DNA of 64,000 bases. It comes from Octopus bimaculoides (Eukaryota). Shown piece by piece: positions 2,964 through 51,644 of this stretch. The number at the start of each line of letters is the position of its first letter. Position 1 is the first letter of the stretch. The stretch spans positions 45,159,431 through 45,223,430 of the forward strand of contig NC_068993.1 in assembly GCF_001194135.2 (NCBI RefSeq), written 5' to 3'. The position numbers were made by a program, and so were the translations under genes. The notes beneath the pieces are model-generated. The model saw only the letters and a list, made by a program, of their open reading frames with translations, had not been told where the DNA came from and searched no databases.

Positions 2964-3003
<40 letters not shown>

Positions 3004-3559
3004 NNNNNNNNNNNNNNNNNNNNNNNNNNNNNNNNNNNNNNNNNNNNNNNNNNNNNNNNNNNNNNNNNNNNNNNNNNNNNNNNNNNNNNNNNNNNNNNNN
3101 NNNNNNNNNNNNNNNNNNNNNNNNNNNNNNNNNNNNNNNNNNNNNNNNNNNNNNNNNNNNNNNNNNNNNNNNNNNNNNNNNNNNNNNNNNNNNNNNNNNN
3201 NNNNNNNNNNNNNNNNNNNNNNNNNNNNNNNNNNNNNNNNNNNNNNNNNNNNNNNNNNNNNNNNNNNNNNNNNNNNNNNNNNNNNNNNNNNNNNNNNNNN
3301 NNNNNNNNNNNNNNNNNNNNNNNNNNNNNNNNNNNNNNNNNNNNNNNNNNNNNNNNNNNNNNNNNNNNNNNNNNNNNNNNNNNNNNNNNNNNNNNNNNNN
3401 NNNNNNNNNNNNNNNAGGAAGGACAACAAAAGAAAGAAAGAGACCTCGATATTATGCAAATAGAGGAATTTATCTGTAAAAATATGTGACACTTATTCAG
3501 TAGCCATGATAAAACTCCGAGTTTCGGATGCCAGGGTGGGAGCCCACGCCAACATCTCT

Positions 3560-4110
3560 TCAGTTATCTGGCTTCCGAACCACATGGTTCTGGGTTCATT
3601 CCCACTGCCTGGCATCTTGTGAGTAGATTTGGTAGACGGGAACTGAAAGAAGTCCGTCGTATATATACAGGGTTGGCCAAAAGTCACCTGACAGTAACAA
3701 CTGAATGAATTCAATAAAAGCATCTAAATATGAAACATCATGAAAATTGTTCAGCCTGAAGTCCTTCTTGAGTGACACATTTTTCCATTCAAGTCAATAA
3801 TACAGAATTACAAATGGCATTTATGGAATTTTGATTTACTGTCGGGTGACTTTTGGCCAACCCTGTTTATATATATGTGTGTGTGCGTGTGTGTGTGTGT
3901 GTCTTTATGTCTGTGATTGTCCTCCCCCACCGTCACTTGACAACCGATGTTGGTGTGTTTACGTTCCTGCAACTTAGCGGTTCGGCAAAAGATATCGATA
4001 GAATAAGTACCAGGTTTACAAAGAATAAGTCATGGGGTCGATTTCTTCGATTAAAAGAGCGCTGGTCCAGCATGGCCGCAGTCAAATGACTGAAACAAGT
4101 AAAAGAATAA
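3560..4110 (+). mobile_element. tRNA-derived SINE (family B), interrupted by a MITE
   Basis: Shares head GGTTC..TCCCACTG and body CTTGACAACCGATGTTGGTGTGTTTAC...CAGCATGGCCGCAGTCAAATGACTGAAAC with the 8905 copy. Confidence 0.8.
3668..3865. mobile_element. 198-bp Tc1/mariner-type MITE
   Basis: 30-bp TIRs CAGGGTTGGCCAAAAGTCACC(T/C)GACAGTAA match at 29/30; TA on the left, mutated on the right. Confidence 0.9.
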
Positions 4111-4564
4111 AAAAATAAAAGAATATATATATATATATATATATATAAGTATCAATATATATATGAATGTGTACATGCTGAGAATTTGCATTTTTGTATA
4201 CATGTGTATATATGCGTTTCTAAGCAAAAGTTTTGTATCTGTGTGTATGTGCACACACACACACACACACACACACACGTACACAGACACACCAAGCACA
4301 CACATGTAAATCAATCTATCTATCTATCTATCTCATTCTACGCGCGTGTGTGTGTGTGTATATATATGCACACACACACATATATACATATATATATACA
4401 TATATATAATACACGCACACATACACACGTATATGCATGTATGTATGTATACGTCTTTAGATGTGTATGTGAATACGTGCACATTGAACAAGGTGCATAT
4501 TTGTACATGTGTAACAGGTGACGGTATATATGTCTATGTGTAAAAGAAAGGAAAAGATTTCAGG

Positions 4565-4764: not shown

Positions 4765-4798
4765 ATGAAGGAGTTTTTATTTGGATACGTATTTGTCG
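4765..4798 (+). CDS. Exon 1 (coding part) of a 5-exon gene for a 228-aa secreted/GPI-type Cys-rich protein; MKEFLFGYVFV
   Basis: ATG at 4765; donor G|GTAAGG at 4799; ends phase 1, matching exon 2, and the join gives a hydrophobic signal peptide MKEFLFGYVFVVSILLWIPLSFG. Confidence 0.7.
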
Positions 4799-10085: not shown

Positions 10086-11177
10086 CATACATACATGTAC
10101 CATCATTTTATACATGAAAATGTTCTTCAGCGTCATTTTTGTCAAAACGTGTGTAAATCCTCTGGAGGTGTAAAGAGACATCTACTCTTTCATAAACAAC
10201 ACAAACGAAATAACAGAATCAGAACTGAAACACGATTGCTATATTTACGAAAGTCTTTAAGAGAATCCCTAACCTCAAATGCCATAACGGTTCTCACTTG
10301 AGTAACTAACGCTATATTTGTACTTGAAATGGTTAAGCCTTGTTTCAGAACAGACTGCTTCCGTTCATATATATATATATATATATATATANNNNNNNNN
10401 NNNNNNNNNNNNNNNNNNNNNNNNNNNNNNNNNNNNNNNNNNNNNNNNNNNNNNNNNNNNNNNNNNNNNNNNNNNNNNNNNNNNNNNNNNNNNNNNNNNN
10501 NNNNNNNNNNNNNNNNNNNNNNNNNNNNNNNNNNNNNNNNNNNNNNNNNNNNNNNNNNNNNNNNNNNNNNNNNNNNNNNNNNNNNNNNNNNNNNNNNNNN
10601 NNNNNNNNNNNNNNNNNNNNNNNNNNNNNNNNNNNNNNNNNNNNNNNNNNNNNNNNNNNNNNNNNNNNNNNNNNNNNNNNNNNNNNNNNNNNNNNNNNNN
10701 NNNNNNNNNNNNNNNNNNNNNNNNNNNNNNNNNNNNNNNNNNNNNNNNNNNNNNNNNNNNNNNNNNNNNNNNNNNNNNNNNNNNNNNNNNNNNNNNNNNN
10801 NNNNNNNNNNNNNNNNNNNNNNNNNNNNNNNNNNNNNNNNNNNNNNNNNNNNNNNNNNNNNNNNNNNNNNNNNNNNNNNNNNNNNNNNNNNNNNNNNNNN
10901 NNNNNNNNNNNNNNNNNNNNNNNNNNNNNNNNNNNNNNNNNNNNNNNNNNNNNNNNNNNNNNNNNNNNNNNNNNNNNNNNNNNNNNNNNNNNNNNNNNNN
11001 NNNNNNNNNNNNNNNNNNNNNNNNNNNNNNNNNNNNNNNNNNNNNNNNNNNNNNNNNNNNNNNNNNNNNNNNNNNNNNNNNNNNNNNNNNNNNNNNNNNN
11101 NNNNNNNNNNNNNNNNNNNNNNNNNNNNNNNNNNNNNNNNNNNNNNNNNNNNNNNNNNNNNNNNNNNATATATATAT

Positions 11178-13326: not shown

Positions 13327-13532
13327 ATTCTTTTTAACTTTGGCTCAAGACCAGCAGTTTGAGAAGAGAGGGATTCGATTGTACTGACTCCAGTACTCAA
13401 CAGGTACTTTATTTTACTGACCCCCGAAAGGATGAAAGGCAAAGTGGACTTTGGTAGAATTTGAACTCAGAACAAGAAGAAATGCTGCTAAGCATTTTGT
13501 CCAACGCACTAACGGTTCCACAAGTTCGCCGC
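13327..13532 (-). mobile_element. tRNA-derived SINE family A
   Basis: rc reads GCGGCGAACTTG...AAATGCTTAGC...CTGAGTTCAAATTC...TTTGCCTTTCATCCTTTCGG. Confidence 0.8.
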
Positions 13533-13798
13533 TTTCCGGTGCATACATAGTAGGACAGGATAGTCAAAATTTGACTGTTTTCAAACGTAGATCTACTTGA
13601 TAAAGTGCCAATATTGAGGCTTAACAACAGCCACAAAAAAATGCAACGGCAACACAACAGCAATAATAAAACCCCAAAAACTTGCCAGGGAGAAGAAGAG
13701 GATTCAGCACAGCTTTATAACATTTGAGCATTCACACATTGATTAAAAATTAAAAAAAAAAAAAATGTCGATTAACCGTCTTATCATTTCCATTTCAG

Positions 13799-13943
13799 TG
13801 AGTATTTTGCTGTGGATACCTTTAAGCTTTGGGTGTGTTGAAGAAGCCATGAAGAAATATCTCACTTGTCTTACTCGGACTAATATTACTCAAAATATCA
13901 TGACATCCAACTTGACTGCAGAACACATCGAAGCTATGTGCAG
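13799..13943 (+). CDS. Exon 2; VSILLWIPLSFGCVEEAMKKYLTCLTRTNITQNIMTSNLTAEHIEAMCR
   Basis: Acceptor ttatcatttccatttcag|, donor CAG|GTAATC, phase 1 in and 2 out, open frame, 3 Cys, two N-glycosylation sequons (NIT, NLT). Confidence 0.88.
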
Positions 13944-14030
13944 GTAATCGAAATATAAACTCGCGAGCGCTACATCCAAAACTTTTCCTATGCAACCTTT
14001 TAAATCTTTTAATATCTTATCCTTCACATT

Positions 14031-14245
14031 GGCGGCGAGCTGGCGGAAACGTTAGCACGCCGAGCGAAATGCTTCGCGGTATTTCGTCTGTCTACTTTCT
14101 GAGGTCAAATTCCTCCGAGGTCGACTTTGCCTTTCATCCTTTTGGGGGTTGATAAATTAAGTACTAGTTGCGTATTGGGGGTCGATCTAATCGACTGGCC
14201 CCTCCCCCAAAATTTTAGGCCTTGTACCTAGAGTAGAAAAGAATA
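14031..14245 (+). mobile_element. tRNA-derived SINE family A, full length
   Basis: GGCGGCGAGCTGGCGGAAACGTTAGC head (A box), GAGGTCAAATTCC (B-box-like), GTCGACTTTGCCTTTCATCC body. Confidence 0.88.
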
Positions 14246-14597
14246 TTTTACTTATTTCAGTCATTTACCTGCGGCCATGCTGTGTTATCACCTTGAAGGG
14301 ATTTTTAGTCGAATAAATCGACACCAGGAATTATTTTTTTTTAAGCCAAGTATTTATTCTATAGGCCTCTTTTGCCGAACTGCTAAGTTACGGGGACGTA
14401 AACACAACACCAGTTGTCAAGCAGTGATGAGGGGATAAACACACACAAAAACACACGCATAGGCGCGCGCACACACACACACACACATTCCGAGGCTAAA
14501 GCCGAAGGCATTTGCCCAAAGTGCTATACAGTGGAACTGAACCCGGAACCAGGTGGTTGAGAAGCAAGCTTCTTACCGCACAGCCAAACCTGCGCCT
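14246..14597 (-). mobile_element. SINE family B, tail-to-tail with the family A copy
   Basis: Reverse complement of the 8905 family (CAGTGGAACTGAACC...ACAGCC..ACCTGCGCCT). Confidence 0.82.
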
Positions 14598-14807
14598 AAG
14601 ATTTCGAATAATCCTAAAGCAAAAAAAAAAAAAAAAAANNNNNNNNNNNNNNNNNNNNNNNNNNNNNNNNNNNNNNNNNNNNNNNNNNNNNNNNNNNNNN
14701 NNNNNNNNNNNNNNNNNNNNNNNNNNNNNNNNNNNNNNNNNNNNNNNNNNNNNNNNNNNNNNNNNNNNNNNNNNNNNNNNNNNNNNNNNNNNNNNNNNNN
14801 NNNNNNN

Positions 14808-15269
14808 TTTAGTTGTATGTATTGGAATGTATTGCAAGAAACAGCTTAGTTTCTGTCTCTGACATTTTACATAATTCTTTTCTGCTCTAGGCATAAGGCC
14901 CGACATTTTTGGGGAGGGGGGGCAGTCAATTAGGTCGACCCAGTACACAACTGGTACTTAATTTATCGACCCCGAAAGGATGAAAGGCAAAGTCGACCTC
15001 AGCGGAATTTGAACTCAGAACGTAAAGACAGACGAAATACCGCTAAGCATTTCACCCGGCATGCTAACGTTTTTGCCAGCTCGCTGCCTTTAAATTTTAC
15101 GTAATTCAACGTATACAAGACAATGTGTGAAAAACAAAATAAGAATTTTGAATGAAGTTTTTTTTATAACTAGTTTTTAGACATCGAATGGCTATAGGGA
15201 TCCACCAGAATCAAATTGTAATCAAAGGGGTCCATCGATAAAAAAAAAATAAATGGTTGAGAAACCCTG
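14808..15269. mobile_element. hAT-type MITE, copy 2, with a nested SINE; left end lost in gap
   Basis: Colinear with 7610-7833 and ends ...GGTTGAGAAACCCTG. Confidence 0.8.
14878..15093 (-). mobile_element. SINE family A with a 14-bp TSD
   Basis: TSD ATTTTACATAATTC (14864-14877) and ATTTTACGTAATTC (15094-15107). Confidence 0.9.
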
Positions 15270-16649
15270 CACTAGAGAAAAGAAAGCCATAGTTCTTGGG
15301 TGAAAGCACGGTAGTCTTTGGGTTGCAGTTTAATCGATGTTATATATGAGTGGCTGCTATGAAATGATCATCAAAGATTATGAGGTTAAGGAATGCTCAG
15401 TAGTGAGGAAGTAAAGTAAATGCATTGATAATGATTGGGTTGAATTGACGTACAAATTTGTTGCTTAGTGGAGCAGCAGAGAACATTCTGATAGCAGTAG
15501 AAGAGACAGAGAGACAGATAGCGTTTTGGTTGTAGTTAGTGATAATTTTCAAATGACTAGAAATTCCATTGTTGTAAGCTGTCTAGAATGTTTGTATACG
15601 TAGTTGTATTAGTAACAGCAGAAGTACCTCCAAGAAATGTACGAAATGTGGGTCTTGTTTGAAGTTCGTAAAAGGGTCAGAAATTGTTCAGAAGTATGGA
15701 ATTTTCTGACCCCGATGTCGTAAACTAGCCTTTGAATTGCAACTTAGAGGGAATGCTATGAAAAGATCATGAGAAATTATGAGGTATAGCATTTCTACAA
15801 GGACTGAAGATTTTAGCTGTGGGTTATAGAAGATGTGTAGTCGCAATACTGATTTCTTGATATGCACAACGGTTGCACGGGGTGGATTGCTGTAGTGGAA
15901 TTATATAACTTCGGGCCGGCGAAAGTTTTCTGCATGAAAGCAGACAGAAACGACATAGAAACCCACTGGACAGACTGTACATATACATTGTCTTTGACAA
16001 GACTGGACTTTTTGTGGGATTTGTTTCGACCTTATGCATTCTGAGTTCAAATTCCGCCGAGGTCAGCTTTGCCTCTTATCTTTTCAAGGTCGATAAAAAA
16101 ATACTAATCCAGGCTAGATTGGTGGATCAGATTCCTTGTAGTATTTGTTCTAGCTTTTTACGTTCTGATTTCAAATCCTGCCGTGACGTACATGGGTGGT
16201 AGACTAAAATTTTTGTCTTGTTTAACACCACTACTCGAGATCTTGGGTACCTTTAGCAAAATCAACTTGGTTGCAAGCAATGGAGCCGGGTTTCTGGTCT
16301 GAGAATATCCTCCTCCCTCCTTCTTACTATGAGACCCCGTGAGGGACAATGAACACTACATTCCTTCCTAACTAAAAGATTAGAAAAAAAGGGAGGAAGG
16401 GGAAGTAACTACGATTTTTGTCGTTTAGTCAAAAGCGGAAGAAGAAATACCCATGACCTATTTACGTCCTCTAACATTACTTGAGAAATACAGAAAAGCA
16501 ATGTGTTTTTCTTTCTGTTTTTAAATCTGTCGCAAGTGATTTTTCAGGGTGAGGAGATTTAACTATTATTTCTTGAAGATCGAATGTAGTTATGGTTTGA
16601 AATGAATCTGCCACATCAGATCTAAACGAGGGTATATTTTCGTTTGTAG

Positions 16650-16783
16650 GGAGAAAAAAACACTGTTTCAGTGTATGAGTAAAGTAACCGAGTGTTCAAC
16701 GTATACACGAGAGATGCTTCTCACAGGAATCGACATTAATTCAATGCGTCAGGCTTATGATAAATTGTGCCAACGGAAGGACG
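16650..16783 (+). CDS. Exon 3; EKKTLFQCMSKVTECSTYTREMLLTGIDINSMRQAYDKLCQRKD
   Basis: Acceptor tatttt-cgtttgtag|, donor G|GTAAAT, phase 2 in and 1 out, open frame, 3 Cys. Confidence 0.88.
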
Positions 16784-17619
16784 GTAAATACGCATACATT
16801 TACTTCTCTTCTTTGTATTTGTGTTTTTGTTGTTGTTGTTGTTGTTGTTCTTCTTCTTCTTCTTCTCCTCCTCCTCCTCCTCCTCTTGGTTCTTGTTCCT
16901 CCTTTTTCTCATCATCATCATTGTCGTCATCCTCCTCCTCCTCATCAAAGTACTTTAAAGTGAAGAGGGGTACTCACTTCACGATAAGTACCCATGCGAC
17001 CTTAGCATTTCTGGAATAGCAAATCTCAGCAAAAAATGCTTGATAGAGAAACACTCTACATATCAGATGAAGGTGATGTTTCTTTTAAATTTGAGGTTTA
17101 ATGAACAATAAGGACAACAGAAACAATGAAGTCCTTAAACCCCTACAATGCCCCTAAAAGTACCGATTAAATGTCACTAAATCCTATTTCTGTAGAAGGT
17201 TTTTCACATGTGATCAGGAGCTACTTCAAAGTATCACTACGGCACAACCTGCAACTGAGGCGTGATGCTGTTCCTAAAACAATATTCAATGCCATCCGTA
17301 AAAAAGACTACTCCGGGATAAATATACACACGTACATATCAACAGAGGTGTTATTGGTGAAACATTCCCATCACAACTTTTGTCAAAAAGAATCTTGATA
17401 TAGTTGTTTGGGAGGGAAAACAAAACGCAGATATAGTCATAGATGTCCACTAACTTACAGATGTAATCATCTGTTTCAAATGTATCGAGAAAGATAGTGT
17501 TTACAGATAACCACCTCGAAATAGCTACCTTGACTATACATTCATATCTATAGAGGTAGTTATTGGCAAATTTGGCAATATGAATACATCTTTTCAATGA
17601 TAATCGTGAAAAGTATATA

Positions 17620-18467
17620 CTGTAATAACCTCACTTTACGAGGACCCACTTTACGAGACTCCGGGTTTACGAGTTCTATTTTATAATAAATATAAAAAGG
17701 TTAAACAGCCATTTTGTGTGTACGGTAACGTCGCAATATGTGGCAACACTGATTCTGACGCATCTGCACAGCTGCATGTAGCGACGAAGTAAAATGACGG
17801 CATAAAATTTCAATGTCTTAGTTTGCGCTTGCGCTTCGTTGAGAGAGATTATTATATGTTAATTCTTCGTGCCACATATTTTATATTGAATACGTGTATT
17901 TACACTAGTATTTTCAACATTTTAAAACCCATCCAATATGTCTAAACGAAAGTGTTCAACGGACACCGTCAGGAACAAAAAGAAACGAAAAACCATCACT
18001 TTGGAAACGAAACTTTGAACGAAGTGCAAAAGTTTCTATTACCATAACAAATGTTTCTGCGTGTTACCAAGAAATTTGTAAAAATAGTTTCTTCTCAGCA
18101 AGCAACTCAAGACTTGCTTTTTTAAAAAGAAAGTTACAAGTCCGTCTACGAGTGCTTGTGAATCGGCGGTCGCGTCTACAAGTGATGGCGTACGCGAATC
18201 TAGTGCGAGTTAAAGTGATTCAGAAAACGATTATAATATTTTTAATCATAAATAATCTTGACATTCTTTTTACTTTACATAAAATATTCTTTACATTCTA
18301 CTGCTATTTTATTGCCATTTATTTACGAGTATTATAAATTTTATAGGTAAAATATTTTTCTGCGAACGAATTACTATATATAAGATTGTTACTACGGGAA
18401 ACTTACGAGCTTTCGCTTTACGAGCAGTCTCCGGGAACAAATTAACTCGTATACCGAGGCATTACTG
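17620..18467 (+). mobile_element. Tigger/pogo-like non-autonomous element, 848 bp
   Basis: TA flanks; TIRs C(T)GTAATAACCTCACTTTACGAG and rc CAGTAATGCCTCGGTATACGAG; subterminal TTACGAG repeats; N-terminal remnant MSKRK...KKRKTITLETKL from 17938. Confidence 0.8.
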
Positions 18468-18533
18468 TACATACTTACATGCATACAATATGCACATACA
18501 TACAATATGCACATACATACAATATGCACGTAT

Positions 18534-18921
18534 TTGTTGTTGTTGGCACTCCGTCGCTTGCGACGTCGATGGTTCCAGTTGATCCGATCAGCGGAACAGC
18601 CTGCTCGTGAAATTAACGTGCAAGTGGCTGAGCACTCCACAGACACGTGTACCCTTAACATAGTTCTCGGGGAGATTCAGCGTGACACAGTGCGACAAGG
18701 CTGACGCTTTGAATTACAGGCACAACAGAAACAGGAAGAAAGAGTGAGAGAAAGTTGTGGTGAAAGAGTACAGCAGGGTTCGCCACCATCCCCTGCCGGA
18801 GCCTCGTGAAGCTTTTAGGTGTTTTCGCTCAATAAACACTCACAACGCCCGGTCTGGGAATCGAAACCGCGATCCTATGACCGCGAGTCCTCTGCCCTAA
18901 CCACTGGGGCATTGCGTCTCC
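18534..18921 (-). mobile_element. tRNA-derived SINE family C, full length
   Basis: rc head GGAGACGCAATGCCCCAGTGGTTAGGGCAG, B box GGTTTCGATTCCC, (CAA)n tail; matches the 40890 copy. Confidence 0.9.
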
Positions 18922-19284
18922 ACATGCACGTATATACTTGCGTATCTACATACATGCGATCATATGAGAAGTAAATATGGTCTTCAGAACTTTCTGCATG
19001 CATTAAATCATTGGCTCGCAATGTGTTTGCCGTACCAGTGCTCATATCAACATTTGTGCTACTCCATTGGCTGTTAGATGCAGTCCGGGCTATTGGCATT
19101 GAACTACTAAAATTGTTCATTCATGTCAGAAATTTCCACGTCAGCAGTGATGTAGACTGCTTTTACTTAAAAAAGAAAACAAAGCAGAAGAGGCTAAACA
19201 TCGATTCGAACAGCCTTTGAATATCGCATCATATCCCCTCAACCAACATCTGCAAACTGATCTGGTTTTCCTTTTCTGTTTCAG

Positions 19285-19432
19285 AATTCACCCGTGATCT
19301 TCCTTGCCTAGAAAAATATTCCAGCGCCATGGATAAGTCTTTTGCCGCAGTGGTTGAAGAACGCAGCGATTTAAGACAGAAATTATCCTACTCCGACATC
19401 ACATTTGACGAATACTTCGAGAAATATTGCCC
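19285..19432 (+). CDS. Exon 4; EFTRDLPCLEKYSSAMDKSFAAVVEERSDLRQKLSYSDITFDEYFEKYCP
   Basis: Acceptor ttttccttttctgtttcag|, donor CC|GTACGT, phase 1 in and 2 out, no stop codons in the joined frame; not in the ORF track. Confidence 0.87.
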
Positions 19433-19950
19433 GTACGTAAATAAAATGAAAAAAATGTGAAAAAAAAAAAGGAAAAGTATCATTATCCTACTTCCAAAAC
19501 TTCCACAAATTTCCACCACAACCACCATTACCACCACAACCACCAACACCACCACTGTGACGATGAAGCCGTCGCCGCCGTCCACGATGACGACGTCGAC
19601 GGCCACTATCATCATCATCACCACCAGCACTGCCACATAAATCAATGGGGGAGTCCTCTACGTAGCCATTTCGACAGGGCGGGGGTTATTCGCCAAATTT
19701 CCAAATTACACCCAACCGTCATAGATAAGGTAAAGGACATTAAATAACATAGCCCGACATTCCCTTAGTTTCAAAAGACTGGTGGATGGTCACGACTGAA
19801 ATGCCTTATCAAGGGTCTCTCGGACCACGGCTGAAGGCCCTCATTTGGGGATAAACAACAGCAACTAAATGAGCAAACAAGCTAGATTCTATATGGTCGT
19901 TCGCCTTGCTAGAAATAACAGTCAAATCTTCATCGTATTATAACACTGTA

Positions 19951-20167
19951 CGAGGGGGTGCTGAAAAGTTCCTGGCTTTGGGTAAAAGAAAATGCAAGAG
20001 GATCAGTTAATTATGATTTTATTGAACATATTCCCCTTTCAGATTCACACATTTATTGCAGCGGTCCTTCAGTTTTTCTAAGCCCAGTAAAAGAACTCGG
20101 AAGGTTGGGCTGCCAACCAGGCCTTTCATGATACCCTTAAAGCCAGCAAAATTTCAGCTCCCCCTCG
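19951..20167. mobile_element. 217-bp mariner-type MITE in intron 4
   Basis: TA-CGAGGGGGTGCTGAAAAGTTCCTGGCTTT ... AAAGCCAGCAAAATTTCAGCTCCCCCTCG-TA. Confidence 0.9.
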
Positions 20168-20580
20168 TATTGTTCAGTCATATCTGACGGGGTTCACAAC
20201 CTCTACCACCGCCGCTGTCGTCGCCTCTGCTGTCCCTGGGGTATTTCCTGAAGTAAGTACCTAGCCTTTGTTACACTAACTACCTCTCTACTCATGGATA
20301 AGCCAAGGAGAATACGTTTACAGCATCTATGGAACCGCAGGGGATGGTAGATATTGGTTAAGTACAACCGTACTAATCTGCCTTAGTTGTAAGTATTAAA
20401 AGACAATTTAGCTTCAGTTCTTGTAAGCACGAAGAAAACTGACTTTTACTTCTATCTTCCATTGCTATTTGTTTAACATTAGTCGTTTGTTAGAAGATAC
20501 TGTTTTTTTCTTTTTAAACACGTGTAAATATATAATGTCATGACTTTACGAGAATAAATTTGTTTGTCTTGTATTTGCAG

Positions 20581-20806
20581 AATGTGGAAGAAAGTAATTG
20601 ACAATTTGCCTGAAGTTATCGGATGTCCACAGACGTTCGTTGAACTTTTACAAGACTACTTCTATTCAATGATGCCGGAAAAGTGTAAAGCGATTACAGA
20701 GCAATATCGACCTGAAGACAATGGTTCCTCCAATGTCATCTTTAAGGGAGGACAAACGTACTTTAGCTTCATATTATTTCTTATCTTCGTCTTTGCTACT
20801 GAATAA
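20581..20806 (+). CDS. Exon 5 (last coding); MWKKVIDNLPEVIGCP...KCKAITEQYRPEDNGSSNVIFKGGQTYFSFILFLIFVFATE*
   Basis: Acceptor ttgtcttgtatttgcag|, phase 2 in, TAA at 20804-20806; small-residue NGSS, a spacer and a hydrophobic tail resemble a GPI signal; total CDS 687 nt = 228 aa + stop. Confidence 0.88.
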
Positions 20807-21099: not shown

Positions 21100-22150
21100 C
21101 TCAACGTTCTGAGTTCAAAACACCATCAAAGTCAACTTTGGGGTATGATAAAATACAGTAACAATCAACTACTGGGGACAATATAATAGACTGATATCCT
21201 CCTCCAAATTTGTGGCCTTGAACCTATTTTAACGACAGTCATTATTATCATTATTACTTCGTCTGTTTACGTTCTGAGTTCAAATCTCACCGAGGTCGAC
21301 TTTGCCTTTCATCCTTTCGGGGTCAATAAAATAAGTTCCAGTTGAGCAGTTGGGGAGGTCAATGTAATCGACTTACCTCATCCCCCGAGTTTGCTGGCCT
21401 TGTGGCAACGCCTGTCTTTACGTTTTGAGTTCAAATTCCACCGAAGTCGACTTTGCTTTTCATCCTTTCGGGGTCAATAAAATAAGTTCCAGTTGAGCAG
21501 TTGGGGAGGTCAATGTAATCGACTTACCTCATCCCCCGAGTTTGCTGGCCTTGTGGCAACGCCTGTCTTTACGTTTTGAGTTCAAATTCCACCGAAGTCG
21601 ACTTTGCTTNNNNNNNNNNNGGTGTCAATGTAATTGACTTACATTTCTCCTGAAATTGCTGGCCTTGTGTCAAAATTTGAAAACCATTACTATTGTTATT
21701 GCTTTACGTCGACGAGCTGGCAGAATCCTTAGCACGCTGAACAAAATGTTTAGCGGCATTTCCTGTCTAAAGTTCTGACTTCAAATTCGGCCGAAATCGA
21801 CTTTGCTGCTCATCCCTTCTAAGTCGATAAAATAAGTACCAGTCAAGCATTGAGGTCGATGTAATATACTAGCCCCGTTCTCCCCCAAATTTCAGGTCTT
21901 GTGCCTATAGTTGAAAGACTTACTATTATTACTAAAAATAAGGCGGTGACGTGGCAGAATCGTTAGCAAGCCGGAAAAAATGCTGAGCGGCATTTTTTTC
22001 CGGTTTTACGTTTTGAGTTCAAATTCCACCGAGGTCGACTTTGCCTTTCATTTTTTTTCATTGTCATTGAAATAAGTACCAGTTGGACACTGGAGTTGAT
22101 ATAATTGACTAGTCCGTTCCGTTTAAATTTCAGGCCTTGTACCTGTAGTA
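21100..22150 (+). mobile_element. Head-to-tail cluster of SINE family A copies, including a 151-bp tandem repeat
   Basis: Core GTCGACTTTGC at 21295, 21446 and 21597 (period 151); further copies begin near 21706 and 21944. Confidence 0.85.
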
Positions 22151-22618
22151 GAAGGACTATTATTGCTACGAATATATGATAAAAATATTTTATAGTTACT
22201 ACTTACGTATACTTTCTTGATATAATTCCAACACTGCAACACTATTACGCATAATGTTAGTTTCTCTTAGATTTTACTAGTCCTAAATCACCACATTAAT
22301 CGATGCCTGTTGATCTCTAATAGGAAAAAAACAAAAATGGCATTCACAATGTTTGATTTACAAATACCTACAAACACACACGCACAAGTACTCACGCTAA
22401 ACTTAACCCTAACTCTACGGCTAACTAGATAAAAAGTACTCAATACATGTTGTACAGTATTTTCATGTGAATCGGGTGAGTGGTTAAACTTCATACACAC
22501 TAAGAGTTTTACGTTCGATGTATCTTTCAGGTGACAAAAAATATGTCGCCTGAAAGAACGCAGCCAGTGTGAATCCTGAATAGCGACGGAAAGCTAGTTT
22601 CTCTCTCTCTCTCGCTCT

Positions 22619-29885: not shown

Positions 29886-30467
29886 CAGCATGGTGAAATG
29901 TATAAACCGAAAATACGTCGTCAAGAAAAAAGGGAATATAAAAAACATCTGTGTCACTCATTGATTTATATAACTCTTAACACCATATATTTGCCTGTTT
30001 TGTTTATTTTATCANNNNNNNNNNNNNNNNNNNNNNNNNNNNNNNNNNNNNNNNNNNNNNNNNNNNNNNNNNNNNNNNNNNNNNNNNNNNNNNNNNNNNN
30101 NNNNNNNNNNNNNNNNNNNNNNNNNNNNNNNNNNNNNNNNNNNNNNNNNNNNNNNNNNNNNNNNNNNNNNNNNNNNNNNNNNNNNNNNNNNNNNNNNNNN
30201 NNNNNNNNNNNNNNNNNNNNNNNNNNNNNNNNNNNNNNNNNNNNNNNNNNNNNNNNNNNNNNNNNNNNNNNNNNNNNNNNNNNNNNNNNNNNNNNNNNNN
30301 NNNNNNNNNNNNNNNNNNNNNNNNNNNNNNNNNNNNNNNNNNNNNNNNNNNNNNNNNNNNNNNNNNNNNNNNNNNNNNNNNNNNNNNNNNNNNNNNNNNN
30401 NNNNNNNNNNNNNNNNNNNNNNNNNNNNNNNNNNNNNNNAACCACATAAACATCCATGCGCCTATGT

Positions 30468-31670: not shown

Positions 31671-32429
31671 CATATATGTGTGTGGGTATGTGTGTATGTG
31701 TGTGTCTGTGTGTAGGAGATTACTCAGTCCTTAATATATATATTAAAAATTTCCTACGCTATGCAGTGCATGGAGATACATTAAAATTTAAAATGACATG
31801 CAGGCTGGCTGCTCCTGCAGTTTGCACAAAGTATCAGTTGCAAACGCCAGTTCAATTATTTCAAGTCCTAGTGACTCTCATAAATCTCAGTACTTGTTCT
31901 CCTCTTGTTCCGATCAAATTTCTCACAAATACAAATATAAAAACTCAACGCGCCTATATATACGTGTGAGTCTCTTTGTGTGTGTGTATACGTGACAAAA
32001 CCTTTTTATAAAAATATTTTTACTAAAAGCTAGCGCAAAAAACATGATTTGGTTGTTATTTGTTTCAAAGCAAAACAAAAAAATTGCTATGTAACAGGTT
32101 GCAGGTTGCAAGGCAATGGGTTTAGGCATGGCTATGTGGTTAAAAAGCTCGCTTTGCAATCAGGTAGTTTAGTGCCCTATTGTACGGCATATTGAGCAGG
32201 ATGTTTTTCTATAGCCCCAGGCCAAAGCCCGAGCCAACAACTCGGCTAACCCCCGGGTTAACTCCCAGGACAATCCATGTGCTAATCCCCGTGCTAATCC
32301 TCGGGCCAGTCAGTGACTTGTGAGTAAGCTTGGTAGATTAAAAAAAAAACTATGGAAAGGTCCGTCTCGTGTATGTGTGTGACATAGCATTTTTATCAAA
32401 ATATTTTTTGCTAAATGCAAACACAACAG

Positions 32430-32640
32430 ACCTGGCAGAAAGGTTAGCACTCCGGGCGAAATTCTGACCGGTATTTTGTCTGTCTTTACGTTCTGAGTTC
32501 AAATTCCGCCGAGGTCGACTTTGCTTTTCATCCTTTCGAGGTCGATAAATTAAGTACCAGTTGCGAACGGGGGTCGATCTAATCAACTGTCCCACTCCCC
32601 CAAATTTTCGGGCCTTGTGCCTGGAGTAAAAAAAGAATAT
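32430..32640 (+). mobile_element. SINE family A
   Basis: Matches 14031-14245. Confidence 0.85.
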
Positions 32641-45999: not shown

Positions 46000-46445
46000 T
46001 AATATTGATTTCACATTTTGGCACGAGACCAGAAATTTCGAGGAATGGGCTAAGTCGACTATATTGATTCCAGTACACAACTGGTACTTATTTTATCGAC
46101 CCCGAAAGAGATGAAAGGCAAAGTCGACCTCGACGGCATTTGAACTCAGAACGTAATGACGAACGAAATTCTCTAAGCATTTTCCCCGCGTGCTAACGAT
46201 TCTGCCAGCTCGCCGCCTTACAACTATTAATAATATTACTGCCTCTAAAGCTGGTAGAATCATTAGCACGCGGGGAAAATGCTTAGCAGCAATCGTTATG
46301 TTCTGAGATCAAGTTTCGCCGAGGTCAGCTTTGCTTTTCATTCTTCCGGGGTCGATAAAATAAGTACTTATTGAACATTGGGTTCTACGGAATCGGCTTA
46401 CCGTCTTCCCCGATATTACTGGCCTTGTGCCAAAATTTGAAACCA
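46000..46445. mobile_element. Head-to-head pair of family A SINEs (minus 46000-46217, plus 46248-46445)
   Basis: Both match family A in opposite orientations. Confidence 0.82.
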
Positions 46446-47070: not shown

Positions 47071-47928
47071 GAATTTTGATTGGTTAGTGTATATATATAT
47101 ATATATATATATATNNNNNNNNNNNNNNNNNNNNNNNNNNNNNNNNNNNNNNNNNNNNNNNNNNNNNNNNNNNNNNNNNNNNNNNNNNNNNNNNNNNNNN
47201 NNNNNNNNNNNNNNNNNNNNNNNNNNNNNNNNNNNNNNNNNNNNNNNNNNNNNNNNNNNNNNNNNNNNNNNNNNNNNNNNNNNNNNNNNNNNNNNNNNNN
47301 NNNNNNNNNNNNNNNNNNNNNNNNNNNNNNNNNNNNNNNNNNNNNNNNNNNNNNNNNNNNNNNNNNNNNNNNNNNNNNNNNNNNNNNNNNNNNNNNNNNN
47401 NNNNNNNNNNNNNNNNNNNNNNNNNNNNNNNNNNNNNNNNNNNNNNNNNNNNNNNNNNNNNNNNNNNNNNNNNNNNNNNNNNNNNNNNNNNNNNNNNNNN
47501 NNNNNNNNNNNNNNNNNNNNNNNNNNNNNNNNNNNNNNNNNNNNNNNNNNNNNNNNNNNNNNNNNNNNNNNNNNNNNNNNNNNNNNNNNNNNNNNNNNNN
47601 NNNNNNNNNNNNNNNNNNNNNNNNNNNNNNNNNNNNNNNNNNNNNNNNNNNNNNNNNNNNNNNNNNNNNNNNNNNNNNNNNNNNNNNNNNNNNNNNNNNN
47701 NNNNNNNNNNNNNNNNNNNNNNNNNNNNNNNNNNNNNNNNNNNNNNNNNNNNNNNNNNNNNNNNNNNNNNNNNNNNNNNNNNNNNNNNNNNNNNNNNNNN
47801 NNNNNNNNNNNNNNNNNNNNNNNNNNNNNNNNNNNNNNNNNNNNNNNNNNNNNNNNNNNNNNNNNNNNNNNNNNNNNNNNNNNNNNNNNNNNNNNNNNNN
47901 NNNNNNNNNNNNNNNNTATGTATGTACA

Positions 47929-51432: not shown

Positions 51433-51644
51433 GGTTTCAAATTTTGGTACAAGGCCAGCATGTTCGGTGGGAGGAGTAAGTCAATTACATCGACCACAGT
51501 GCTCAACTAATACATATTTTATTGATCCCGAAAGGATGAAAGGTAAAGTCTACATCGGCAGAATTTAAATTCAGAACATAAAGACGGATGAAATGCTGCT
51601 AAGCATTTTGCCCGGCGTGCAAACGAATCTGTCAGCTCGCTGCC
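51433..51644 (-). mobile_element. SINE family A
   Basis: Reverse complement of the family A consensus. Confidence 0.82.

Follow-up and report, generated by a model that had tools for sequence, protein, structure and literature searches.

A duplicated cysteine-rich module in an Octopus bimaculoides gene and its likeness to vertebrate neuritin

The locus considered here raises the question of which protein is encoded by a gene of Octopus bimaculoides in which a pair of exons appears to be present twice, and whether the module specified by such a pair belongs to a family known from other animals. The gene lies in a window of 64,000 nucleotides (nt), the whole stretch of DNA that was analysed (RefSeq assembly GCF_001194135.2, contig NC_068993.1, positions 45,159,431 to 45,223,430, forward strand; positions given below are those of the window unless stated otherwise), which is 100 % identical to chromosome CM046613.1 of GCA_001194135.2. 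A sequence-only reading of this DNA had proposed that exons 2 and 3 and exons 4 and 5 are two copies of one Cys-rich module, that the second copy had lost two Cys residues together, and that their counterparts in the first copy form a disulfide bond. The analysis presented here leads to a five-exon gene with a product of 228 residues. Taken as a whole, it is likely that this product is a two-domain protein with a glycosylphosphatidylinositol (GPI)-type anchoring signal, that the module has been duplicated within it, and that it is a distant relative of neuritin (NRN1/CPG15).

The gene, its product and the duplication of the module

The coding region opens with a probable first exon at 4765-4798 on the + strand, which holds the ATG, 11 codons (MKEFLFGYVFV) and one further nucleotide in front of the donor GTAAGG. 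This exon closes in phase 1 and specifies the beginning of the signal peptide; it agrees with the UniRef model A0A0L8I8M2, and its protein sequence is 100 % conserved in Octopus sinensis. Exon 2 (13799-13943, +, 145 nt, phase 1 to phase 2) specifies the end of the signal peptide (…SILLWIPLSFG), the residues C24, C35 and C59, and the sequons N40 (NIT) and N49 (NLT). Exon 3 (16650-16783, +, 134 nt, phase 2 to phase 1) carries C68, C75 and C100 and ends four residues past the last of these. The copy of exon 2, exon 4 (19285-19432, +, 148 nt, phase 1 to phase 2), holds C112 and C153, and exon 5 (20581-20806, +), a copy of exon 3 extended by a tail, holds C169, C189, the sequon N201 (NGS) and the stop codon TAA at 20804-20806. 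Exons 2 to 5 are spliced in frame with GT/AG borders throughout, and the intron phases along the gene run 1/2/1/2. From exon 2 on, the translation is identical to that of the public models XP_014785990 and A0A0L8I8M2. All Cys positions named in the sequence-only reading, as well as S123 and N162, were recovered in this translation, and its account of the introns was equally correct: both modules open in phase 1 (exon 2 in codon 12, exon 4 in codon 105), and a phase-2 intron follows right after the third Cys of each, in codon 60 (TGC AG|gt) and codon 154 (TGC CC|gt).

The two copies of the module correspond to domain 1 (residues 24-100, with six Cys) and domain 2 (residues 112-189, with four). 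A Smith-Waterman comparison of residues 24-104 with residues 105-200 gave a score of 42, compared with 24.5 +/- 4.2 in shuffled sequences (z of about 4, p 0.002-0.005). When the Cys residues were kept anchored and only the other residues were shuffled, the non-Cys similarity of the two domains still stood out, with a z of 3.5-3.8 and a p of about 3e-4. The same register was found by hhalign, with a P of 0.026. Aligned by MAFFT, the domains are only 28 % identical over 71 aligned columns. The exons that open the two domains are nearly equal in size (145 nt for exon 2 and 148 nt for exon 4), and both modules are of the phase 1-1 type, as a consequence of which copying one does not disturb the reading frame. 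That a module of two exons was duplicated within the gene, as put forward earlier, is thus well supported by residue similarity beyond the Cys, by intron position and phase, and by exon sizes. It was called ancient, which holds insofar as it took place before O. bimaculoides separated from O. sinensis and Octopus vulgaris; the near-identical Octopus orthologues, the only ones at hand, allow no further dating.

Of the residues proposed to have taken the place of the second and fourth Cys in domain 2, N162 does stand opposite C68. For C35, the alignments place a three-residue insertion (YSS) in domain 2, so that its counterpart is A126 rather than S123, which lies three residues earlier; the assignment of S123 was probably wrong. 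The claim that the second and fourth Cys were lost together stands to the extent that domain 2 lacks both of them. That they were lost from domain 2 rather than gained by domain 1 is conditional on neuritin, with its six invariant Cys, being the likely outgroup. If so, domain 2 would secondarily have lost Cys 2 and Cys 4 while keeping C1, C3, C5 and C6.

Two routes to such a duplication can be envisaged. The exon pair bounded by phase-1 introns may have been duplicated in tandem, or the whole gene may have been duplicated, after which the last exon of the upstream copy would have gained a phase-1 donor joined to the phase-1 acceptor of the downstream exon 2. This acceptor readily takes upstream phase-1 donors, as it is also used by the zinc-finger transcript discussed below. 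Further modules were not found in the window: an HMM (hidden Markov model) search of open reading frames in six frames, together with a search for the Cys pattern by regular expression, returned only the four known exons, and tblastn of the window gave no modules beyond these. Other matches to the regular expression were discarded as translated microsatellites.

Only two hydrophobic segments, residues 4-25 and 213-228, are seen in the hydropathy profile of the protein. The N-terminal one, ending in ...PLSFG|C, is a predicted signal peptide. The C-terminal one belongs to a GPI-signal-like tail that starts at about position 20720 and comprises the small residues NGSS, a spacer and the hydrophobic stretch YFSFILFLIFVFA, which is 13 residues long and ends two residues before the stop. 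It is read as a GPI signal because it is preceded by NGSS and a spacer and is not long enough to cross a membrane and leave a tail. The three N-x-S/T sequons (N40, N49 and N201), the even number of Cys in each domain and the hydrophobic periodicity, which is of the alpha and not the beta type, fit a glycosylated, helical, disulfide-stapled ectodomain. Judged from these features, the protein is most likely secreted, N-glycosylated and GPI-anchored at the cell surface, and its ectodomain would consist of two tandem, mainly helical modules stapled by disulfides.

Protein and profile searches of 5.8 billion proteins brought up only sequences from Octopus, namely from O. sinensis, O. vulgaris and O. 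bimaculoides, and a Logan contig. The orthologues within the genus are 93-95 % identical; that of O. sinensis is 93 % identical and the model of O. vulgaris is truncated. The Logan contig (L003), a fourth, Octopus-like, genomic sequence, contains a conserved exon 5 fragment. A comparison of O. bimaculoides with O. sinensis yields 13.5 non-synonymous and 6.5 synonymous differences, which amounts to a synonymous divergence (dS) of 0.053 and a ratio of non-synonymous to synonymous divergence (dN/dS) of 0.5; the two sequences differ by no indel, and every splice site is preserved. Though intact, the gene is fast-evolving.

Likeness to neuritin and the weighing of alternatives

No Pfam family is recorded on the part of the protein encoded by exons 2 to 5, and sequence searches of the PDB with the protein, the Octopus alignment and an NRN1 alignment revealed no relative and no solved structure of neuritin. 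Matches in the PDB to MAF1, proteasome subunits and a myosin fragment were rejected as noise. GFR-alpha/GAS1, saposin-like proteins, Ly6/uPAR, odorant-binding and chemosensory proteins, the cysteine-rich domain of Frizzled and the RECK knots were dropped on their Cys pattern alone. Neuritin itself was picked out by its Cys pattern from among many Cys-rich families, and the exons of NRN1 were mapped only afterwards. In the literature that was searched, nothing was found on invertebrate, mollusc or octopus relatives of neuritin, or on its disulfides or structure; invertebrate members may already be listed in databases such as InterPro.

The human NRN1 sequence used here was validated as neuritin (PF15056) by its 97-100 % identity to database entries. 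In an alignment of vertebrate NRN1 sequences (n=18), six Cys are invariant, at positions 31, 41, 66, 75, 83 and 111. The resulting framework, C-x9-C-x24-C-x8-C-x7-C-x27-C, resembles that of octopus domain 1, C-x10-C-x23-C-x8-C-x6-C-x24-C. Expressed as distances from Cys to Cys, these are 10, 25, 9, 8 and 28 in NRN1 and 11, 24, 9, 7 and 25 in the octopus, and the offsets of C3 and C4 from C1 are identical in the two. The summed gap difference is 6, which has a probability of about 5e-5 under random placement of six Cys, a value uncorrected for the number of families considered.

The exon structure points in the same direction. In the NRN1 genes of deer (L004), salmon (L005) and great white shark (L006), one intron interrupts codon 19 in phase 1, 12 codons ahead of C1, and another interrupts codon 67 in phase 2, right after C3. 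In the octopus gene, the phase-1 intron falls in codon 12, likewise 12 codons ahead of C1, and the phase-2 intron in codon 60, again right after C3. As these offsets from C1 and C3 agree, exon 2 is 145 nt long in both NRN1 and the octopus gene, with the same phases, and exon 1 of NRN1 ends, like octopus exon 1, in phase 1 inside the signal peptide. The joint chance of both intron coincidences is estimated at about 1e-4 to 5e-4. Marginal residue similarity was obtained in the right register, both for domain 1 against NRN1 with the Cys anchored (p of about 0.05) and for an HMM of domains 1 and 2 against NRN1 (p of about 0.03). Octopus domain 2 and NRN1 share a W three residues past C3, and a [DE]-[ML]-[WL] motif is present 6-8 residues past C5 in domain 1, domain 2 and NRN1. 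On the strength of the Cys framework, the exon structure and the predicted anchoring, there is good reason to regard the module as a distant relative of neuritin, common descent being suggested rather than proven by these features. The stricter proposition, according to which the gene is a genuine homologue of neuritin/CPG15 in the Lophotrochozoa that has been duplicated into two domains, is favoured with less assurance, albeit still over its negation. The likeness of domain 1 to neuritin is an addition to the sequence-only reading, in which the module had been given no family.

A number of points weigh against this interpretation as a whole. No homologue outside Octopus was found among the 5.8 billion proteins, and PF15056 is absent from the precomputed Pfam lists of octopus proteins, in which only zinc-finger families appear. 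A Smith-Waterman comparison of domain 1 with NRN1 was not significant (z 1.4); an HMM built from the 18 vertebrate NRN1 sequences gave p values of 0.21 (domain 1) and 0.34 (domain 2), the alignment behind it being shallow (at least 61 % identity) and its sensitivity accordingly low; and hhalign against NRN1 gave a non-significant E of 0.45-0.7. Because many families had been considered, the probability of about 5e-5 for the Cys framework needs a look-elsewhere discount. The dN/dS of 0.5 is based on only 20 differences and is weak proof of constraint, and the Octopus species are too close for conservation or co-variation of the Cys to be within reach of a comparison of orthologues. The signal peptide and the GPI signal were judged by eye and from the hydropathy profile. 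As to the duplication, the probability given by hhalign for domain 1 against domain 2, with profiles of single-sequence depth, was 1.9 %, and the matching Cys spacings that had been offered as evidence for it do not serve as such: four Cys placed at random in 96 residues fit some subset of the domain 1 Cys equally well in 26 % of cases (8.8 % if one exact gap is required). Of the real Cys-Cys distances, only C59-C75 and C153-C169 agree exactly, whereas C1-C3 measures 35 versus 41 and C5-C6 measures 25 versus 20 residues. The match was in part circular, as S123 and N162 had been picked by counting from C112 and C153.

These points lend themselves to other explanations. The duplication may be real and the module may belong to a fast-evolving orphan gene, restricted to Octopus or the cephalopods and unrelated to neuritin, the likenesses being due to coincidence or convergence. 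The failure of every profile method to link the module to NRN1, the lack of PF15056 in the Pfam lists and the confinement of all protein matches to Octopus are what such an orphan would show; a dN/dS of 0.5 suits a fast-evolving lineage gene, and animal genes commonly have a phase-1 intron within the signal peptide as well as exons of about 145 nt. Coincidence would nevertheless have to account for two intron positions that are exact in both codon offset and phase and that were checked after the hypothesis had been made, for the Cys framework, for the same succession of signal peptide, domain and GPI tail, and for marginal residue similarity that falls in the correct register, so that an origin unrelated to neuritin is considered unlikely. 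It is far less probable still that the two halves of the protein are not homologous to each other and that helical, Cys-containing segments have been aligned by chance. The ease with which random placements match the Cys spacing, the low hhalign probability and the fact that positions 123 and 162 were counted out and not seen as Cys would all agree with this, but the non-Cys similarity (p of about 3e-4), the Smith-Waterman score (p 0.002-0.005), the same intron position and phase after Cys 3, the symmetric phase-1 borders and the near-equal exon sizes do not.

A third explanation takes the gene model of RefSeq as the true product. Under the name 'zinc finger protein 680', RefSeq lists a protein of 362 residues in both O. 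bimaculoides and O. sinensis, of which the C-terminal 216 residues are encoded by the exons in the window. Its upstream part comes from a zinc-finger open reading frame at 3001-3699 of the upstream sequence (L001), about 11.5 kb before the start of the window, which is spliced about 25 kb downstream to position 13799. Such a fusion, modelled alike in two species, would leave the protein without a signal peptide and thus intracellular, which is a further point against a secreted product; its occurrence in both species suggests transcript support for the junction at 13798/13799. The first 146 residues of the model are, however, part of a C2H2 reading frame that continues uninterrupted for 232 residues, and the donor of the fusion (ACAG|GTAAGA) sits within an H-T-G-K linker between fingers. 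In O. sinensis, the same start (3001-4228 of the O. sinensis sequence, L002) is annotated with a product of its own, 315 residues long. Residues 12-228, encoded by the window exons, contain one His and no C2H2 motif (C-x2-4-C-x12-H-x3-5-H); the sequons, the paired Cys, the signal-like start and the GPI-like end make sense only in the secretory pathway, and the conserved short first exon gives a proper signal peptide. The RefSeq model is a chimera, a mis-annotation, and it is improbable that the 362-residue protein is the true product.

The interpretation of the gene as a duplicated, GPI-type relative of neuritin leads to a prediction on disulfide bonds. On the assumption of a conserved fold with every Cys bonded, the absence of both Cys 2 and Cys 4 from domain 2 implies that these are partners in domain 1, and a C35-C68 bond is a reasonable prediction. 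Transferred to human neuritin, it would correspond to a bond between C41 and C75, provided that the fold is conserved there as well. C24 and C35 are 11 residues apart and C68 and C75 are 7 apart; bonds between C24 and C35 or between C68 and C75 within one helix are impossible, since the members of each pair would share one helix face. The remaining bonds may be guessed to be C1-C5 and C3-C6, which would join helices A and C by two staples and helices B and D by one. If neuritin is taken as a guide, the protein would have its role at the surface of the cell, or once released from it, as a ligand or a co-factor.

The 5' end, the introns and the assembly gap

Three 5' ends are on offer for the gene: the exon at 4765-4798 of the UniRef model, an in-frame ATG at 13765, and the zinc-finger exon of RefSeq about 25 kb upstream. 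The alternative ATG opens a stretch at 13765-13798 (+), located 5' of the exon 2 acceptor, which would yield the N-terminus MSINRLIISIS if left unspliced. This stretch overlaps the polypyrimidine tract of the acceptor; the ATG is retained in O. sinensis, where the stretch shows two non-synonymous changes. MSINRLIISIS is exactly equal in length to the MKEFLFGYVFV of exon 1, the ATG lying 34 nt before exon 2. As both 11-codon N-termini yield 228 residues, the residue numbering of the sequence-only reading holds with either start. At the distant zinc-finger exon, the codons of the H-T-G-K linker themselves form a consensus splice donor.

The assembly gap at 14639-14807 lies within intron 2, 695 nt past the donor of exon 2 and 1842 nt before the acceptor of exon 3, between inverted repeats resembling a short interspersed nuclear element (SINE) and beside a run of A. 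It has no effect on the finding, and its O. sinensis equivalent is non-coding. Phase 2 is shared by the donor at 13943 and the acceptor at 16650, so that the frame is continuous. The flanks of the gap are colinear with positions 30364 and 30553 of L002; about 188 nt lie between these, near the estimate of 169 N, with stops in all three frames, and the O. sinensis protein has no added residues at the junction ...EAMC / REK.... The same N runs, including this gap, are present in GCA_001194135.2, and this chromosome-level assembly is unusable for closing gaps because it carries the same Ns. In total, the window contains 19 N runs (for example 873-1506, 10392-11167 and 47115-47916), which are identical in GCA_001194135.2 over window positions 1-23806.

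The failure of the assembly at 14639-14807 is probably explained by the inverted pair of SINE-like repeats together with the adjoining A-run. The element is about 210 bp long and present in 12 copies in the window. Those bracketing the gap are located at 14031-14241 (+) and 14877-15088 (-), and the ten further copies include 13390-13532, 21255-21403, 21409-21554, 21942-22153, 32429-32633, 46020-46217 and 51435-51644. A tRNA origin of the repeat was sought with ARAGORN, by which no tRNA was detected in the window. Intron 2 is 5.2 kb long in O. sinensis and 2.7 kb in the window, a difference mostly made up by one block of about 1.8 kb (L002, 32041-33853) that is absent from O. bimaculoides.

Other repeats were noted in and around the exons. 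A 17-nt unit, ACATACATACAATATGC, occurs in three tandem copies in intron 3 (18477-18529), and a CCA/CCACCACAA repeat lies close downstream of exon 4 (19509-19555). When the donor of exon 3 is read through (16784-17016), the frame stays open for 77 codons and enters (TGT)n(TCT)n(CCT)n microsatellites at about 16826-16950. The read-through starts with a hydrophobic stretch, GKYAYIYFSSLYLCF, that is faintly like the real GPI tail (TYFSFILFLIF) and may be what remains of an ancestral last exon; the two are not significantly similar (p 0.09-0.12).

Comparison with known systems

Neuritin is a much-studied, activity-regulated neuronal surface factor. If the relationship proposed here is true, neuritin would be older than the vertebrates, would have existed in the bilaterian ancestor at the latest, and would have preserved both of its intron positions since. 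The paired loss of Cys in domain 2 predicts a bonded pair in domain 1 and, when transferred, in neuritin; the joint loss of Cys 2 and Cys 4 would then provide the first evidence-based disulfide map of neuritin (C41-C75 in the human protein). An octopus relative would, in addition, allow neuritin to be studied comparatively in an animal whose large brain evolved independently. That the gene has gone unnoticed is explained by its names, 'zinc finger protein 680' or 'uncharacterized', and by the lack of a Pfam match on the module. From a methodological point of view, intron position and phase recovered a relationship that was missed by sequence profiles. Should the link to neuritin be wrong, the case is reduced to a commonplace duplication of an exon pair in a surface protein restricted to one lineage.

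Among other known systems, C2H2 proteins are linked to the gene by its name: the finger array is located only in the upstream RefSeq exon outside the window, and none is present in the octopus module exons. Proteins of the GAS1/GFR-alpha family (PF02351) consist of tandem helical, Cys-rich domains on a GPI anchor, an architecture like that proposed for the octopus protein. The ten Cys of the GFR-alpha domain are arranged differently, however, and the searches gave no pointer to the family.

With the neuritin family, which comprises NRN1 and NRN1L, the differences concern the number of domains, the Cys content and the distribution. The octopus protein consists of two tandem domains in 228 residues, whereas neuritin has a single domain in about 140 residues; octopus domain 2 lacks Cys 2 and Cys 4, whereas all six Cys of NRN1 are invariant; and the octopus protein comes from a cephalopod, whereas the NRN1 matches listed are all from vertebrates. 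NRN1 is a protein of 142 residues with a signal peptide and a GPI anchor (PMC12715718). In both this protein and that of the octopus, a Cys-rich domain directly follows the signal peptide, predicted as it is for the octopus, and a GPI-type signal is located at the C-terminus.

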